From assembly GCF_001194135.2 (NCBI RefSeq), contig NC_068985.1:17233461-17297460 (forward strand): a stretch of DNA of 64,000 bases, in the 5' to 3' direction. The notes under the pieces were generated by a model. That model was not told where the DNA came from and searched no databases. It saw nothing but the letters and a program-made list of their open reading frames with translations. The DNA is from Octopus bimaculoides. Lineage: Eukaryota. Positions 2,596-58,330 of the stretch are shown one piece after another. The position numbers and the translations under genes were made by a program. Numbering within the stretch: the first letter of the stretch is position 1; the number at the start of each line of letters is the position of its first letter.

Positions 2596-4117
2596 ACTGG
2601 TCATAACTTTTAATTTACTAAAAAATTCATACATACATATACATATATAAATACACATATATATATATACACACCCACGTGTATGTATATGTGAAGTGAG
2701 TGCAAGAGAAATGGTAAAATTTTCATGAGTAAATCAGTCAAAAAATAACTTAATGTGTCTTACTGGATAAAACATTTAAAAATAGAAGACTACACTTATC
2801 TATTTAGTTTCTTCATTAAAATTATTAAAAAGAGGAGAGAGAATTAGAAAATTATAGTAGTTTATTTGGAGAATGAGTATGACAGGTGCTCTGGAGTGAA
2901 ATCAGTAACACGGTCAGCTTGAGTCTCGTTAGTGGGCCTGTTATTTTGTCTCAAATTGGTGCTTATAATATCTAATACCGAAAAGAAATTGTTTCTTATT
3001 TTTCACTTACAGTTCCTGCATTTAGGCAAATTTAATTTACTGTTCATTTAGAATTTATAAATCTAATTACTACTAACCAATACTACATGAAAATTTTCTT
3101 TCAAAAAAAAAAAAAAAATCTACCAAACTCTATATACCATAATTGGTGCTATTTTTGTTTTATATTACATTAATTTCAGCTATAAATTGGTGCTTGATAT
3201 CTTAACAAGAAAAATTATTTTACTGTTTACCTAGAAGTGTGTTATTTGAAATGTTAGAAAATTTCTGAATATAAATATATTTCAAAGAGTTAGATATCAT
3301 GTAATACTTCTGAAGTATCTTTTCAATTAAAATGCTCTATAAAGTCATTCATATCAAATATCAGTTTAAAGACAAAAATAAAATAAAAATATAATGATTA
3401 ACTTCATATGTTTAAATGTTTAATTTATTTAAAAATTTTTACTAAATATTTTTATAATTAATAAAATGAATGTTTTTTTTATGTGTGTGTGTGAGAGAGA
3501 GACAGTGAGTGAGTGTTCGGGCGCGTGCGCGTGTGCAGTTAGTGAATACAAGGGACATAACCTCATCAAACTGATATTGTCAACTACTGGAAGCACTATC
3601 TAGCAAAAACGTCAACAATGAAATACTGGATAATAAGTCATTTTACATATGTTTAGATGCAGTAAAATTACTGTGCTGGTGACAAGAATAAATGACATGG
3701 CAAAGATAAAATTATGAAATGATAAAATAAAATGCACATGGCATAGCATTAACGTCTTAATGTAACCATAGTCACAAGATAATTCACATAATTGCTCTCT
3801 GTTGTTAATAACTTAATAATTTATATTGTCCCTTATTCGAAACATAAATAGTTTTAATAACACAAGTGGAAGAGGGGATATTAATGCTGAGAAGTTATAG
3901 ACACTAATTACTGTAACTGAACAATTAGAACATGAAATCCTCTTGACTGGAAAACATATATTCTTAAGATTTTTTTTTATTTGCTGGAGTTAGACATGAA
4001 TGAATTTAAGTGTTGAAAAGTTGTCATTATAGAAAAATTTTGCAGAAAAGAGATTAACATTGAGATAAATACATTATTTACATTTGACGGATATTTGTCC
4101 TCATCTTGTTTGTTGTT

Positions 4118-4163
4118 AACACAATGTTTCGGCTGATATACTCTCCAGCCTTCATCAGGTGTC
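4118..4163 (-). ncRNA. Minimal type-I hammerhead ribozyme motif (family H1, left arm of copy A)
   Basis: GACAC-CUGAUGA-A-GGCUG(gagaguauau)CAGCC-GAAAC-AUU-GUGUU. Stems I and II pair. Stem III carries a CpG-type G>A change. Confidence 0.7.
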
Positions 4164-4365
4164 TTGGGGAAATTTCAAACCTGGGTTCTCATTCCAAAGG
4201 TATTTTTCTATGTTAATAATATTATTATTATTATTATTCTGGTCACTGCTTGGAATCGAACCCCAAGATTCCAAGTTCGATTCCAGGCAGTGACTTGAAT
4301 AATAATAATAATAAAACATCGAAAAATACCTTCGGAATGAGAAGCCAGGTTTGATATTTTCCCAA

Positions 4366-4411
4366 GACACTTGATGAAGGCTGGAAGGTATATCAGCCGA
4401 AACATTGTGTT
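4366..4411 (+). ncRNA. Minimal type-I hammerhead motif (H1, right arm of copy A), core C3>U
   Basis: GACAC-UUGAUGA-A-GGCUG(gaagguauau)CAGCC-GAAAC-AUU-GUGUU. Confidence 0.6.
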
Positions 4412-4980
4412 AACAACAAACAAGATGAGGACAAATATCTGTCAAATGTAAATAATGTACATCATTCCTCATCTCTTAAATATAGAACTGCATTAAGATA
4501 AAATCTATAAAGGATTTCAATATAACTATATGATTATTTAATGAATGGTGTGAGATTTTTTCTTCCTTTTTGTCTTGCTATTTACCCAACAACCTCAACA
4601 GTACAGGGGACGGGGCATGAGAAAAAAAGCACCCTGTGCACACTGTAAAGTACTTCGCATTAAGAGGGGCATCTAGCTGTAGAAACCCCACCAACAGACA
4701 CTGGTGCTTGGCACAGCCCCATTGTTAGCTGGATCCTGGCAAATCATCCGACCCATACTAGCATGGAAAGCAGATGTTAAATGATAATGGTGAGAAGGAA
4801 TAGGATACTTGAGAGACAAAAATATTCCAAAATGACTTACCTAAAGACAATTTGATTAATGAAACATTAACAAATGTAAGAGACTGAAAAAACTGGACTG
4901 ATCCACCTTTTAAGACTTTTCATAAATATCTTGGTTTGACAGTATCAAGGTCTTCCAAATGCAGTCATCAACAACACCTC

Positions 4981-17954: not shown

Positions 17955-18138
17955 TGTATTGTAGTAATCTGTAGATAAAATTAGGGTACTTGGGTATGCC
18001 TCTAGGCTTCATCAGAGAGTTTTATAAGATAGTCCAAATTAACCCTATGAACTTCTTGGACTATCTTATAAAACTCTCTGATGAAGCCTAGAGGCATACC
18101 CAAGTACCCTAATTTTATCAACAGATTACTACAATACA
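17955..18138. repeat. 83-bp near-perfect inverted repeat with an 18-nt loop
   Basis: 17955-18037 versus 18056-18138, one mismatch. Confidence 0.95.
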
Positions 18139-18880: not shown

Positions 18881-19974
18881 ACACATACATGTGGATCATC
18901 ACACACATACATGTGGATCATCACTGTTGACAAGAGTTGGGTCTACGGATACAAGCATGTGATGAAGCAGCTGTTGTCACAATGGAAAGCTCTTCATCTG
19001 CAACACATACACACACACACACACACGCATGTGTGCATGTGTGTGAGTTTGTGTGTGTACAGAAGGGAGGTCACTGACTCAGAGACAAAGGAATCTGTTG
19101 GATGAGATGATTAGCTTTTAGACACAATCAACAAGTTAATTAAGATAGATTAAAATGATGTGTTGCTTTCTGATAAAGATGGATATCATAGTCCTGGCTT
19201 CTGCCAAAAAAAAAAAAAATTAAGCAAAAACCATTTGAGATTTGAGGACATATAGATGAGGTAATATCACATTCAATCAAATAAAAATTAGCTATTTGAG
19301 TAAGGGTGTAGAAGTACTGGGACATGTTTCCTCAAAGAATCTCATAGCATTCCTACATCTTTCTCCAATAATAAATTTATTTATTTATTGATTTACTTTT
19401 ATTGAATGTGATTTTACCTCATCTATATTTCATGGACTTTAAAATGGTATTTGTCTAATTCCTCATCTAAGAAGTCAGGATTATAATGATTATCTTTTTT
19501 AATCACACTTATAATGTTTCATTTTAATCAATTTTAATTAACTTTTTGATTACATTTATATATTGGCCAATAGTTGATTGTCTCATCCAAAAGATTCTTT
19601 TATTTTTGAAACACTTGATAAGAAACACGTGGTTTGCATTCAAAATACAAACCAACAAGAAATATATCAAAATAATAAAACAAAAATACATCATAAACCT
19701 AATCATCCTACCACACAAACCAATAAGAAAGCCTCTGTGATCACCCCACTTGCAAGAAAAAGGAAGTAATTCTCCCTCAAATCTGGTTTCTTAAAAAAAA
19801 GAGTAAGTTGCAGTCTTAGGTATACTATGCCTGAATAAAAGATTGGATTGTCCGTGACTGTTATGGGTAGATCAAAGGTCTGTTTAATCAAGTCTGACTT
19901 GGTATTGAACAGCATTTGTTTCACTGGACAATGTATATCACTGCAATACCTTAATATAACTCTTAAAACCTAGA

Positions 19975-47262: not shown

Positions 47263-47532
47263 AGGCGGTGAGCTGACAGAATCATTATCCCGCTGGGTGA
47301 AATGCTTAGCGGTATTTTGCCTGCCATTACATTCTGAGTTCAAATTCCACCAAGGTAGACTTTGCCTTTTATCCTTTCAGGGTATATAAATTAAGAACTA
47401 GTCAAGTACTGGGGTCGATGTAAACAACTATCCCCCTCCCCACAAATTCCAGGCCATGTGCCTATAGTAGAAAGGATTGTTATTTACATTATTTACATTT
47501 GACGGATATTTGTCCTCATCTTGTTTGTTGTT

Positions 47533-47578
47533 AACACAACATTTCAGCTGATATACCCTCCAGCCTTCATCAGGTGTC
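47533..47578 (-). ncRNA. Minimal type-I hammerhead motif (H1, copy B)
   Basis: GACAC-CUGAUGA-A-GGCUG(gaggguauau)CAGCU-GAAAU-GUU-GUGUU. Intact core with G-U wobbles at former CpGs. Confidence 0.7.
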
Positions 47579-47717
47579 TTGGGGAAATTTTGAATCTGGG
47601 TTCTCATTCCTAAGGTATTTTTCGATGTTATCATTATTATTATTATTATTATTCAGGTCACTGCCTGGAATCGAACTCGGAATCTTGGGGTTAGTACCCA
47701 ACACTCTTAACCACTAC

Positions 47718-47790
47718 GGGCATATGGCATAGTGGTTAAGAGCACAGGCTACTAACCGCAAGATTCCAAGTTCGATTCCAGGCAGTGACC
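47718..47790 (+). other. tRNA-derived (Arg-like) SINE head with A/B boxes; not a functional tRNA
   Basis: GGGCATATGGCATAGTGGTTAAG...CTACTAACCGCAAGATTCCAAGTTCGATTCCAGGCAGTGACC, 73 nt, resembles eukaryotic tRNA-Arg(ACG). Acceptor stem is degenerate. Confidence 0.7.
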
Positions 47791-50700
47791 TGAATAATAA
47801 TAATGATGATGATAACAACAACAACAACAACAACGAAAAATACCTTCATGTACATAATTCCTCATCTCTTAAATATAGAACAGGATTGTTATTATTATTA
47901 AGGTGGCAAGCTGGCAGAATCGTTAGCAAGCTAGATGAAATGCTTAACGGCATTTCACCCGTCACTATGTTCTGAGTTCAAATTTAGCTGAGGTTGACTT
48001 TGCCATTCATTTTTTCAGGGTTGATAAATTAAGTACCAGTGAAACACTAGGGTTGATATAATCAACTATTCTCCTTCCCTAAATTTTGGGCCTTGTGCCT
48101 ACAGTAGAAAGGGTTAGTATTATTATTATTAATAACAACAACGGTAATAATGATAATAACAATATCATTATATGCTTTCAGATATTATATTTTACATAAT
48201 CATTGAATATATATATATATAGCGAAGAAGTTAGACAAAGAAACTGCCTGGAAACACTATGCATAAAATAACACAATGGGACACATATTATTATATGTAT
48301 CATTGATGTTATCAATTTACAGTCATTGTAAATATATTCAATAAATGCTGTCCTCAATTCTGCAGCATTACTTTTTAATTACAATGTTTCTGAATGCAAG
48401 CAATAAAAGAAGAAAAATTTCCAAAGGATTTTAAAACAAAACATGTGGCAAGATATACTTATAGATTTAATGACCTGTTTCACTAACTCTTGTTCTACTG
48501 AATCTGAATTTAGATGAAATATTATCTTGGCAGTTTAAGTATTCTTATCTCCTTTCAAACTTTTGATAGCATACATTTAACAGGAGTGAAAATAAAATAC
48601 TCTATGTGCTTCTCATATCTAGAAATCAATAAAAGCTTGTGGTATTCTATTCTTCATAGCAGCCATAAGGTTTTTATACAATAATGTTACTAAATTGGTT
48701 ATATATTTGGAGAGGAAATAAAAGTAAACATGATAATTTCTTCCAGAAAAATTTCTTCTTCAGTGAAAATTCCATTAAACAAAATGCAATTGCAAACATT
48801 TCAATTTATTTTACATGCGATGGACTAATACATGATTTATTTTAATTAAATTAAAAAGTTATTATTTTTATGCAGAGATGGAGATTTATTTGAATATCAT
48901 TGTGCATCACTGCCATCGTTCACTCCATCTAAACATATCTGACTATAAAAAAATTAGATGCTACTGTTTTTGTCATGTCCATTTGCTTGATTGGTTGCTT
49001 GAGTGACCAGTCATTTATCTCAGAAATTATTGAAGCTAGAAGGTTAAAAAATGTTATCAATAATTACTTAGCAAAATGTAAATTTTATTTTCCATTCTTT
49101 TTGTTTTTCCTTTCCTAAGAAATTATTTGAAAGTTAAATATGCATCCCAGCTGCAGTCAACATGTCATATACTGGGTAAGATGCTGATAGCCTAATAAAA
49201 AGAAACAAATATATTCATCTTCATAAATGTAATTTTTTCAGATATTAGTGACCACAATAATGAGTAATACAAAACAGATTCACAGGATTAACATCAAGCT
49301 GATAATTTAAATAGAAAAAAAAAAAAAAAGAATACCAGCCTGATTATTCTATAATTAGTGATTTATGAGTAAATATGAATATAGTCATATTCTTATATAT
49401 GTAATATTACTACATATATAGTTTGGATAAAGATTGAACAGACAAGTTTCAATGTTGTTTAGCAACGTATGAAGCTTAACTCACCACTCTACTCCCAAGG
49501 TGTTGAGATAAGGTAGCAGAGTGTTACTTATTGAAAATGTAAACAAAATTAAGCGAGGCACATTTACATTAATGGTACACATGGGCTAATTTAACAGTGA
49601 TATTAAATGCAAATGGATAGGACTCAGCATATTTAATTATTTTTCTAAATACAACCTCATCATCATTTTACATTTGGGGGTTTTTTTTTCTATGCTGATA
49701 TGGAAAGGTTGTCCAATGTGAGCCAGACTTAAGAACACTTACGTCATTACTCTGCATCAGTTCTTATTTAGAATTACTGCTCTCCAAACTAGTAATACAG
49801 CTTGCAGAGTCCACATCTTTTACATGTGCTAAATGTTTTTGACATGGTTTCTACACCTAGATGTCCTTCCTACTTACAGAATGAACTGAGTTTATTTTCT
49901 CTACTCTATATCAGTTCTTACTCAAAGTTACTGCTATCACAGACAGTTAACTCGTGATGCAACTTACAGAGTCAACATTTCAATTGTATGTTCTCTACAT
50001 GTAGAGAAAAATTCCCGTTATTTTCATTTGTTAGCTATAGATGCTCTAAAATTGTGGTCTTTCTCTTGAATGACACCGTTAGTGCTGAGAAGGGAGACTT
50101 GCATTTTGGGGCAACTACTAGGCTTCCATAAAAAAAAAAAAAGAAACCTTGCCCACCTCTGCATGCACAGTTGCATATAATATGGTAAACCTCGACAGAC
50201 AGAGGACCTTGGATTTATGATAATAAATGGTTTGAACATTTTAAAATGAATCCTTTTCATGATGTAAAAGCTTTAAAATCAAGAGAACAAACTATGGACT
50301 CAACAGGGACAATTCTGAATGCATACATCTATAGTTTCTCTTGTTTTGATTTTACTGACAAGGCTTGGGTCAACACAAGGCTGTGGTAGTAGATATGTAG
50401 CCCACAGTTCTATCAAACTCAAAACCATGCAATCATGAAATTTCTTAACTTACAAGGCTATGTCTGCACCCAGTGGTGGAATTAGTAGTTTACTTAGAGA
50501 TAATCCATTTCTTCACAGTCCTTCTGATAAGGATGTCTTTATGGAAACACTATCATGTTTTCCAGTGTTTATATGGGTGCCAAATTTCAGAAGTTAGACA
50601 TTTCTGTATGTATCTTTAAATCTGATTTCTAATCACTGGTAGTCCTATCCTAGTTAATATGATTCCTCATGATGACAGAGTAATTTGTAGAATAATAAGC

Positions 50701-57741: not shown

Positions 57742-58330
57742 GGATCTTTTTTAAAACGGGGGCCACATTTTTCATTAACGAAACACTTTGAAACTTGGAA
57801 CACTGGTAGAATGTGTCATATAAAACATCTTTTTCTCTTAGTCTTCTTAAAAAAAAAGAAATCCATAAATTATTCCATGTTAAAGTTGTCGTATTTCTGT
57901 AATTTCAACCAATCACTGACGTCCATTCAGCCGATATACATTAAGCGCCGACTACATAAACAAACGATTCTGAAACAATTAACCCTAACCCTAACTCTAA
58001 CCCTAACCCTAACCCTACGGTTAGGGTTAGGGTTAGAGTTAGGGTTAGGGTTAGGGTTAAAGCAAATTTAAAATGAAAAAAGCAAATAAAACGAAGAATC
58101 GTTTGTTTATGTAGTCGGCACTTAATGTATATCGGCTGAATGGACGTCAGTGATTGGTTGAAATTATCGAAATAAGACAATTTTTTACATGAAATAAATT
58201 CGAATACAAAAATATTTTTCTGTTCTATAACACAAAATAGATAAGTATACGAAGTTTGAAAGTCTTTCGGTACCAAAAACACTACGTAAAACATTAATGA
58301 AAAATGTGGCCCCCGTTTTAAAAAAGATCC
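57742..58330. mobile_element. Merlin-like MITE (GG-starting TIR, 8-bp TSD) with an inverted telomeric-repeat core
   Basis: Perfect 37-bp TIRs (57742-57778 / 58294-58330) and TSD gagatgaa on both sides. Internal ~71-bp inverted repeat and (CCCTAA)6-(TTAGGG)6 centre. Superfamily assignment is inference. Confidence 0.85.
57979..58060. repeat. Inverted telomere-like repeat (CCCTAA)6-cgg-(TTAGGG)6
   Basis: Read directly. Each half has one TTAGAG variant unit. Confidence 0.95.

Follow-up and report, generated by a model that had tools for sequence, protein, structure and literature searches.

A stretch of 64,000 nucleotides (nt) of the Octopus bimaculoides genome (NC_068985.1, positions 17233461-17297460, in an assembly of 2.34 Gb; hereafter the window) contains two copies of a repetitive element in which a tRNA-like head is followed by a box resembling a minimal hammerhead ribozyme (HHR), and which is inserted as an asymmetric fold-back. 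This element is a high-copy non-coding retroposon of about 10,000 copies, with the insertion at 4070-4490 as one example. The reading favored here, to which a probability of roughly two in three is assigned, is that the element is a tRNA-derived short interspersed element (SINE) dependent on Penelope-like elements (PLEs), the fold-back arising during integration, when both target strands serve as primers and reverse transcription begins at two sites. The evidence for this reading consists of the structure of the insertions, the form of the hammerhead motif, and the presence in the same genome of PLEs with a hammerhead and an optional tail.

The first copy, at 4070-4490, is a single insertion: its left arm is inverted, its right arm is direct and carries 31 additional nt, and a target-site duplication (TSD) of 12 bp flanks the two. 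The left arm (4070-4261, minus strand) corresponds to positions 241 to 53 of the family consensus, to which it is 94% identical; it is tail-less, and its outer end falls at the putative internal start site described below. The right arm (4259-4490, plus strand) runs from consensus position 37 to 272, is 93% identical to the consensus, and is 5'-truncated inside the tRNA-like head. The inverted repeat was mapped as an outer pair of 145 nt (4070-4214 with 4315-4459, 94% complementary) and a second pair of 40 nt (4222-4261 with 4275-4314, 93% complementary). Outward from the center are found the B box GTTCGATTCC of the head (4275-4284, plus strand), an internal (AAT)n microsatellite between head and 3' module (4298-4314, plus strand), the length of which differs among copies, a spacer, and the HHR-like box. 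The A box is missing in this truncated copy and is present in full-length copies. The 31-nt tail CATCATTCCTCATCTCTTAAATATAGAACTG (4460-4490, plus strand) is carried by the right arm only, and the left arms of the sampled fold-backs likewise stop before it. The two TSDs, CATTGAGATAAA at 4058-4069 and CATTAAGATAAA at 4491-4502, match at 11 of 12 positions, and because a single TSD flanks both arms, two independent insertions are excluded. The initial annotation of this stretch, made from the letters alone, had described inverted arms of about 190 bp at 4070-4490, the same order of parts, the 31 extra nt and the TSD with one mismatch, and all of these were confirmed. Its further claim of a minimal type-I HHR in each arm holds for the core of the left-arm box (4118-4163, minus strand), which reads GACAC-CUGAUGA-A-GGCUGG..CAGCC-GAAAC-AUU-GUGUU, but not for the right-arm box (4366-4411, plus strand), the core of which is mutated to UUGAUGA (C3 to U); in both arms helix III has decayed from ACGU to ACAU, within the shared sequence GAAACAUU.

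The second copy, at 47485-47881, was found to have the same outer ends and a different inner junction, as first reported. Its left arm (47485-47726, minus strand) is nearly full length, spanning consensus positions 246 to 4 with 94% identity, and contains an HHR box (47533-47578, minus strand) in which both CpGs have decayed. The right arm (47718-47881, plus strand) covers consensus positions 1 to about 120, comprising the head with A and B boxes, the microsatellite and the start of the spacer; after an internal deletion it resumes with a tail part (47848-47881, plus strand; consensus 237-270). A perfect 12-bp TSD, AGGATTGTTATT, flanks the unit at 47473-47484 and 47882-47893. On either side lie copies of another SINE-like family (GGTGGCAAGCTGGCAGAATCGTTAGCA...GTTCTGAGTTCAAAT...), one at 47380-47484 and one at 47894-48125, which end in (ATT)n; the left TSD lies inside the (ATT)n-like 3' end of the copy at 47380-47484, into which the second copy was inserted.

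How large and how old is the family? With the right arm of the first copy as query, at least 3,462 first-look matches were found in the genome, and the 40 copies scored were 88-100% identical over the full query. A 35-nt tail junction occurs 9,976 times genome-wide, and a 35-nt segment that both arms contain 15,501 times, a ratio of about 1.55 arms to each tail; for the 46-nt hammerhead box 979 exact matches were counted, and the reversed control of each of these three probes gave 0 occurrences. The consensus, derived from an alignment of 30 copies, was mapped over 272 nt, the full unit being about 272-275 nt. It consists of the tRNA-like head GGGCATATGGCGTAGTGGTTAAGAGCGCGGGCTACTAACCCCAAGATTCCGAGTTCGATTCCAGGCAGTGACCTG, the (AAT)n stretch, and a 3' module of 176 nt, AACATCGAAAAATACCTTAGGAATGAGAACCCAGGTTCGAAATTTCCCCAAGACACCTGATGAAGGCTGGAGGGTATATCAGCCGAAACGTTGTGTTAACAACAAACAAGATGAGGACAAATATCCGTCAAATGTAAATAATGTACATAATTCCTCATCTCTTAAATATAGAACTG, often followed by TAT. 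Within this module a short direct repeat (AATGTAAAT/AATGTACAT) lies about 50 nt past the hammerhead and precedes a terminal tail of 31-34 nt, and the consensus has neither poly(A) nor a 3' microsatellite. Arms diverge from the consensus by a mean of about 3.7% at non-CpG sites and about 21% at CpG sites, from which the family is judged to be fairly young. The element is thus short, non-coding, dispersed, high in copy number and flanked by TSDs, as SINEs are. Recurrent short variants were also observed that join the A-box region of the head straight to the hammerhead (...GTGGTTAAGACACCTGATGA...), which suggests either a 'mini' subfamily or a repeated microhomology deletion.

The consensus head contains an A box, TGGCGTAGTGG, at positions 8-18 and a B box, GTTCGATTCC, at positions 53-62. 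In global alignments with 17 real tRNAs of the same genome, evaluated against shuffles, it reached z values of up to 9.8, the best partner being tRNA-Ala(UGC). The head is therefore treated as a degenerate, putatively tRNA-derived head of the RNA polymerase III (Pol III) type, which presumably serves as a Pol III promoter. The absence of TTTT from the sense strand is uninformative about Pol III, since about every second shuffled sequence is also free of TTTT (P ~0.5). A first look at the genome for tRNA-like sequence returned 408,418 candidates, a sign that repeats derived from tRNAs are very numerous in it.

The architecture of the insertions was examined in 30 sampled loci, 22 of which are fold-backs that can be written as [reverse complement of y..~241-248][x..272]; the sampled copies were the best-scoring matches, and the fold-back fraction taken from them is therefore biased. 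The other eight loci comprise one with a 25-nt inverted head stub (L012), five simple copies and two that are masked upstream. Right arms reach the 3' end of the element in all 30 copies and are mostly near full length, which is partly an effect of selection by the query. The inner end y of the left arm spans positions 1 to 215 among the 22 fold-backs, and the outer end lies at consensus positions 234-249 in 21 of them, in most cases inside the direct repeat AATGTAAAT/AATGTACAT. The exceptions are L013, the left arm of which ends at 208, and L026, where BLAST carried the arm to 265 through an AT-rich flank. The last 31-34 nt are missing from the left arm in all 22 fold-backs, so that the tail is found on right arms only. 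A single TSD of 10-15 bp, typically 12-13 bp, surrounds the whole unit in 18 of the 22. Close arm pairs occur in (-,+) order only, with 8 against 0 (+,-) pairs among the listed matches to the common segment and 3 against 0 among the listed exact matches to the hammerhead box, and no close tail-tail pair was found among the tail-junction matches listed. About 8 in 100 of the 3' flanks listed are microsatellites. At one locus (L045) an arm stands alone, 5'-truncated and without a tail, between perfect 12-bp TSDs, and the tail is therefore optional. Because inner junctions vary and one TSD surrounds each unit, the fold-back was formed at insertion and is not a fixed palindrome; the proposal that the inversion arises at each insertion is thus upheld, and the opposite outcome, that most copies would be fixed palindromes with short TSDs, was not observed, since 22 of the 30 sampled copies are asymmetric, with variable junctions, and 18 of these 22 have TSDs of 10-15 bp.

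Such insertions resemble those of PLEs. The described PLE signature is an inverted 5'-truncated copy together with a tail of 30-40 bp at one end (PMC8557442). For one PLE studied in vitro, reverse transcription was reported to start at two adjacent internal sites, with the tail corresponding to the stretch in between, and its protein to cut and then extend each of the two target strands (PMC11167929). In the octopus element an inverted 5'-truncated copy lies directly upstream and was formed at insertion, and an optional tail of 31-34 nt is present at one end. We infer PLE dependence, both-strand priming and any role of the HHR; in the mechanism proposed, the SINE would be mobilized in trans by the reverse transcriptase (RT)/GIY-YIG protein of a PLE. 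The endonuclease would cut the two target strands about 12-15 bp apart, and each 3'-OH would prime reverse transcription on SINE RNA. A start at the 3'-most site would yield an arm with the tail, and a start some 31 nt further upstream, at an internal site within the direct repeat, an arm without it. Joining of the two cDNAs head-to-head at a variable point would then produce an asymmetric fold-back within one TSD.

The same structure bears on the more conventional view that the element is an ordinary tRNA-SINE dependent on a long interspersed element (LINE), with the hammerhead-like box as a passenger or relic and the inversions produced by twin priming of the L1 type. The tRNA-like head, the dispersal and the LINE-like length of the TSDs agree with that view, as do the richness of octopus-type genomes in RTE, CR1 and Dong-R4 LINEs (PMC13282606) and the fact that no PLE partner was found. 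Twin priming, however, gives consecutive, non-overlapping segments, whereas the arms here overlap by up to about 240 nt (in the first copy, consensus positions 53-241 are present in both). This overlap, in which one consensus region is present twice, excludes L1-type twin priming on one RNA. Nor are a 31-nt tail on one side and two discrete 3' start sites features of LINEs; neither poly(A) nor a 3' microsatellite is present, and no other family, LINEs included, was found to share the tail at up to one mismatch in 29 nt. LINE dependence is therefore considered unlikely.

Were the two arms of a fold-back copied from one template or from two? The two arms of one fold-back are 92.7% identical to each other, against 91.8% for random arms, and the partner is the best match in only 5 of 21 loci. 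At recurrently variable non-CpG sites, 8 minor alleles are shared between partners, against 4.3 under random pairing (P=0.045), and most loci share none; the right arm of the first window copy has five recurrent variants, none of them shared with its left arm. A 3-nt deletion in the hammerhead, described below, is present in 6 of 21 left arms (L005, L006, L009, L013, L025 and L030) and in none of their partner right arms. This discordance argues against one arm having been copied from the other, and it suggests that the arms are two separate reverse-transcription events, possibly on two RNAs. The two-template inference is tentative, because linkage among the variants is weak and they may reflect mutational or RT hot spots; for the same weak linkage the recurrent variants were rejected as clean subfamily markers.

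These data also speak to a snap-back process, in which any RT would reach the RNA 5' end, the cDNA would fold back and copy itself, and the hairpin would integrate as a palindrome. Where the arms are full length, they do join head-to-head at a 5' end that is palindromic (GGGCATATGCCC-like), and the locus with only a 25-nt inverted head stub could be accounted for in this way. A self-copied arm would, however, share the 3' end of its partner, whereas the tail is missing from every left arm sampled; inner junctions are often located far within the element, and the arms are mostly discordant in the variants just described. A snap-back origin is accordingly rated as very improbable. An extension of the PLE-dependent reading, more speculative than the reading itself, is that a dimeric PLE protein cut both strands and copied two SINE RNAs, that the palindromic helix III mainly pairs these RNAs in dimerization or ribonucleoprotein assembly, and that the family would be the first PLE-dependent SINE family; this fuller version is entertained as a possibility, and a rather doubtful one.

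A DNA-level fold-back, or a transposon with terminal inverted repeats resembling a miniature inverted-repeat transposable element (MITE), would explain the long inverted arms, and Rfam reports for them generic long-hairpin microRNA (miRNA) models only. This alternative is essentially refuted by the asymmetric ends with a one-sided 31-nt tail, the variable inner junctions, the 5'-truncated arms, the solo arms with TSDs, and a TSD length of 10-15 bp that is neither fixed nor short. The miRNA hits themselves were rejected as a by-product of any long inverted repeat.

Other inverted repeats were observed in the window. At 57882-58184, 90-nt arms that are 94% complementary enclose a center of head-to-head (TAACCC)n then (TTAGGG)n, with about 36 extra nt on one side, making this another asymmetric fold-back. 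An older repeat at 19218-19460 (extending to about 19475) has 69-nt arms that are 80% complementary. After the right arm comes TAATTCCTCATCT, 13 nt that match the beginning of the SINE tail and occupy the corresponding place in the structure. This may represent a second, older family with the same tail, or chance, and no further copy of it was found in the sequence examined. The repeat at 17955-18138 is a 99% perfect palindrome with 83-nt arms and an 18-nt loop; it contains a CUGAUGA box and no GAAA box, looks MITE-like, and is no hammerhead.

The hammerhead of the family consensus reads GACAC-CUGAUGA-A-GGCUGG-AGGGUAUA-UCAGCC-GAAA-CG-UU/GUGUU, in which the slash marks the cleavage site and the loop is N9. 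The CUGANGA and GAAA core boxes and the UH site are present in type-I order. Helix I (GACAC/GUGUU) has 5 bp and helix II 5-6 bp, including G10.1-C11.1; an unpaired A follows A9, loop III is absent, and helix III is the palindrome ACGU at positions 15.2-16.2. In the window copies helix III has decayed to ACAU or AUGU by CpG transition. A strict minimal-HHR descriptor was devised for this analysis, combining the core boxes, at least 4 bp in each of helices I and II, a palindromic insert flanked by A15.1 and U16.1, and the UH site. The family consensus passes this descriptor and has a better HHR than the window copies; the left-arm box of the first copy fails solely at the decayed CpG. On 20 Mb of first-order Markov random sequence, both strands included, the descriptor gave 0 matches, and in the real DNA examined outside the SINE family it matched two PLE loci only (L048 and L050). 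The minimum-free-energy fold of the 60-nt segment holds helices I and II, at -13.6 kcal/mol against -13.0 kcal/mol for the model structure. The features described for minimal HHRs of PLEs are the extra nucleotide between 9 and 10.1, G10.1-C11.1, the palindromic 15.2-16.2, and a helix I of 4-5 bp (PMC4209133), and all four are found in the consensus. The GAAACGU design of the PAc template printed in PMC11167929 is also the same as in the SINE consensus.

Genuine PLEs are present in the same genome. A search for GIY-YIG gave 2,261 candidates, of which 149 were scored as matches, and one frame of 492 aa carries both RVT_1 and GIY-YIG; its relatives are PLE-type proteins of bivalves and of the cephalopod Argonauta hians (51% identity). 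One PLE family, represented by L050 and seven relatives, has an HHR-like box about 190 nt downstream of the stop codon of the endonuclease. Compensatory changes are seen in helices I and II of this box, with 89.6% of cells paired against 25-53% in slid controls and five pairs changing on both sides, and its helix III is palindromic in two versions (GUACGUAC and GUAUAC). The canonical CUGAUGA is found in L050 only, the relatives reading CUUGAWGA. The 3' ends of this family exist in a short form and in a form 33 nt longer, corresponding to an optional tail. Bona fide PLEs of this genome therefore show the two hallmarks of the SINE, namely the HHR and the optional tail. In most copies of the L050 family the 3' ends adjoin (TA)n, (TG)n or (AC)n microsatellites (L042, L053, L057, L064, L070 and L080), and target preference seems to differ between this family and the SINE.

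Several results weigh against PLE dependence or against parts of it. Foremost, an autonomous PLE sharing the SINE 3' segment, which the initial annotation had suggested looking for, was not found: the 3' module is not shared by any of 50 PLE 3' regions (about 16 clusters), many of which are 20-99% N, and absence from regions so heavily masked is no proof of absence and hence no refutation. Genome-wide exclusion patterns, requiring non-SINE bases upstream of the boundaries 96/97, 139/148, 198/199 and 235/236 and tolerating only 1-2 mismatches, returned SINE deletion and junction variants only. Flanks after the SINE tail are diverse, with no recurrent continuation and no continuation by an open reading frame (ORF). 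The similarity between the tail of the L050 family and that of the SINE is not significant (p=0.28). Two apparent links were discarded: a tail-junction motif shared with one PLE family (ATAAT/TCCTC and ATATAT/TCCTC) was not significant by shuffled local alignment, and BLAST hits of the consensus to PLE 3' regions were unrelated SINE copies lying nearby (L043, L045 and L061). Partial tandems, resembling the pseudo-long terminal repeats (pLTRs) typical of PLEs, and head-to-tail junctions are rare, at about 1 in 100. No TSD was detectable in the five simple copies. The six sampled copies without a long left arm (L007, L012, L014, L020, L022 and L028) all end in GAACTGTAT and have no detectable TSD, and they may reflect a different resolution pathway, for example one with target deletion. 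ARAGORN reported no tRNA in the window or in the consensus head. The proposed check with the Rfam hammerhead model was negative: neither it nor the tRNA model gave a gathering-score hit in the window, a hit at E<=10 in 4070-4490 and its surroundings (3900-4700), or a hit in a near-consensus copy (L010), a miss that would be expected for a motif without a helix III hairpin. The proposal of PLE mobilization thus stands as regards the fold-back and tail signature, the HHR, and the presence of elements with RT and GIY-YIG; a PLE sharing the 3' module was not found in the partly masked regions searched.

A last point on the same side is that no excess of arm 5' ends was found at the HHR cleavage site. 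Arms seeming to begin there gave 1,319 hits, against 39 for a control boundary 10 nt downstream, and almost all proved to be a 3-nt deletion variant (GAAAC---GUGUU), with no true truncation among the first 100. Nothing here therefore indicates that cleaved RNA often serves as a template. This lack of a pile-up agrees with the report that PAc can insert in vitro without cleavage by its HHR (PMC11167929), and the HHR may act as a recognition or dimerization module rather than as a cutter. The deletion variant is itself noteworthy in that about 1,300 arms carry it exactly at the cleavage site, GAAACGUU/GUGUU having become GAAACGUGUU with destruction of the site. It was considered as a left-arm-specific scar of cleavage, and this was rejected on finding it in the right and left arms listed alike; it may have originated as a subfamily, by RT slippage or by a template jump.

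The cleavage data bear most directly on a retrozyme-type life cycle, in which the HHR would cut a multimeric transcript, the monomer would be circularized, and rolling-circle reverse transcription would make the copies. A type-I HHR with a dimer-type helix III in a non-coding unit of about 270 nt recalls metazoan non-LTR retrozymes (PMC7229834; bioRxiv 10.64898/2026.07.22.740005). The SINE, in contrast, occurs as dispersed fold-backs and not in tandem arrays, with head-to-tail junctions at about 1%; its 5' end (the tRNA head) and 3' end (the tail) are fixed, without circular permutations, and no accumulation of 5' ends is seen at the cleavage site. Such a cycle is regarded as highly improbable for this family.

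How does the element compare with known systems? Canonical endonuclease-positive (EN+) PLEs (PMC4209133, PMC8557442, PMC11167929) share with it the minimal type-I HHR, the inverted 5'-truncated copy on the 5' side, the optional tail at one end, TSDs of variable length, and AT-rich or microsatellite target sites. Unlike them, the SINE has no ORF, carries a tRNA-like head in place of the PLE body, rarely forms partial tandems, and lacks sequence identity to any readable PLE 3' end. Metazoan retrozymes, which a 2026 preprint derives from pLTRs (10.64898/2026.07.22.740005), are similarly short, non-coding and AT-rich, with a dimer-type HHR and a proposed dependence on PLEs (PMC7229834; bioRxiv 10.64898/2026.07.22.740005). 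They differ in forming tandem arrays that yield circular RNAs and in having no tRNA head, whereas the SINE is dispersed, with defined ends and fold-backs and no footprint of cleavage or circularization. Non-autonomous Chlamys elements such as MRC1 of Chlamydomonas (PMC8557442) are also non-coding, show PLE-type insertions and are thought to depend on PLEs in trans; unlike the SINE, they share 3' ends with identified autonomous families and have neither a tRNA head nor a canonical HHR.

Classical tRNA-derived SINEs are alike in their A/B-box head, length of 200-300 nt, 10^4 dispersed copies and TSDs. They are unlike in that their 3' tail is also found in a LINE and their end is poly(A) or a short repeat, and they do not routinely form overlapping inverted pairs with a one-sided tail. 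The Sm-alpha and Sj-alpha repeats of Schistosoma are a further parallel, each being a short repeat that combines a Pol III-type promoter region with a hammerhead, as in the SINE. Their HHRs are canonical type-I ribozymes with loop-loop contacts, and the repeats are largely tandem or satellite-like, unlike the SINE. To our knowledge the PLE-type fold-back and tail signature has not been described for them. Hammerheads of Sm-alpha and Sj-alpha are cited in PMC4209133. The classical tRNA-derived SINEs include the octopus families of Ohshima and Okada 1994, cited in PMC10886601. A full-text literature search found neither a PLE-dependent tRNA-SINE nor the sequences of this element, SINEBase, Repbase and the 1994 octopus SINE paper being outside that search. 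HHR-bearing non-autonomous partners of PLEs are thus already known, and what sets this element apart is that a tRNA head, dispersed copies and a minimal HHR of the pLTR type are combined, across some 10,000 insertions, with the fold-back and tail signature of PLEs.

What would PLE dependence of this family mean? SINEs are defined as parasites of LINEs. If the reading is true, a tRNA-headed SINE of about 10,000 copies would widen that definition to include a third class of retroelement, the PLEs, and would link scattered minimal hammerheads, non-autonomous retrozymes and inverted or tailed PLE insertions, which have so far been described separately. In annotation, fold-backs of this kind will probably be mistaken for MITEs or for miRNA-like hairpins (compare the Rfam noise above), or be filed as 'unclassified SINEs'. 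Models of PLE integration have so far rested on one in-vitro system, and the family offers thousands of complete junctions, with ends, arms and TSD, that are usable to test these models with respect to two RT start sites, priming on both strands, and the use of one template or two. Overall, if the two-RNA reading is true, the roughly 10,000 insertions in the octopus genome would constitute a natural read-out of the unsolved mechanism of PLE integration.

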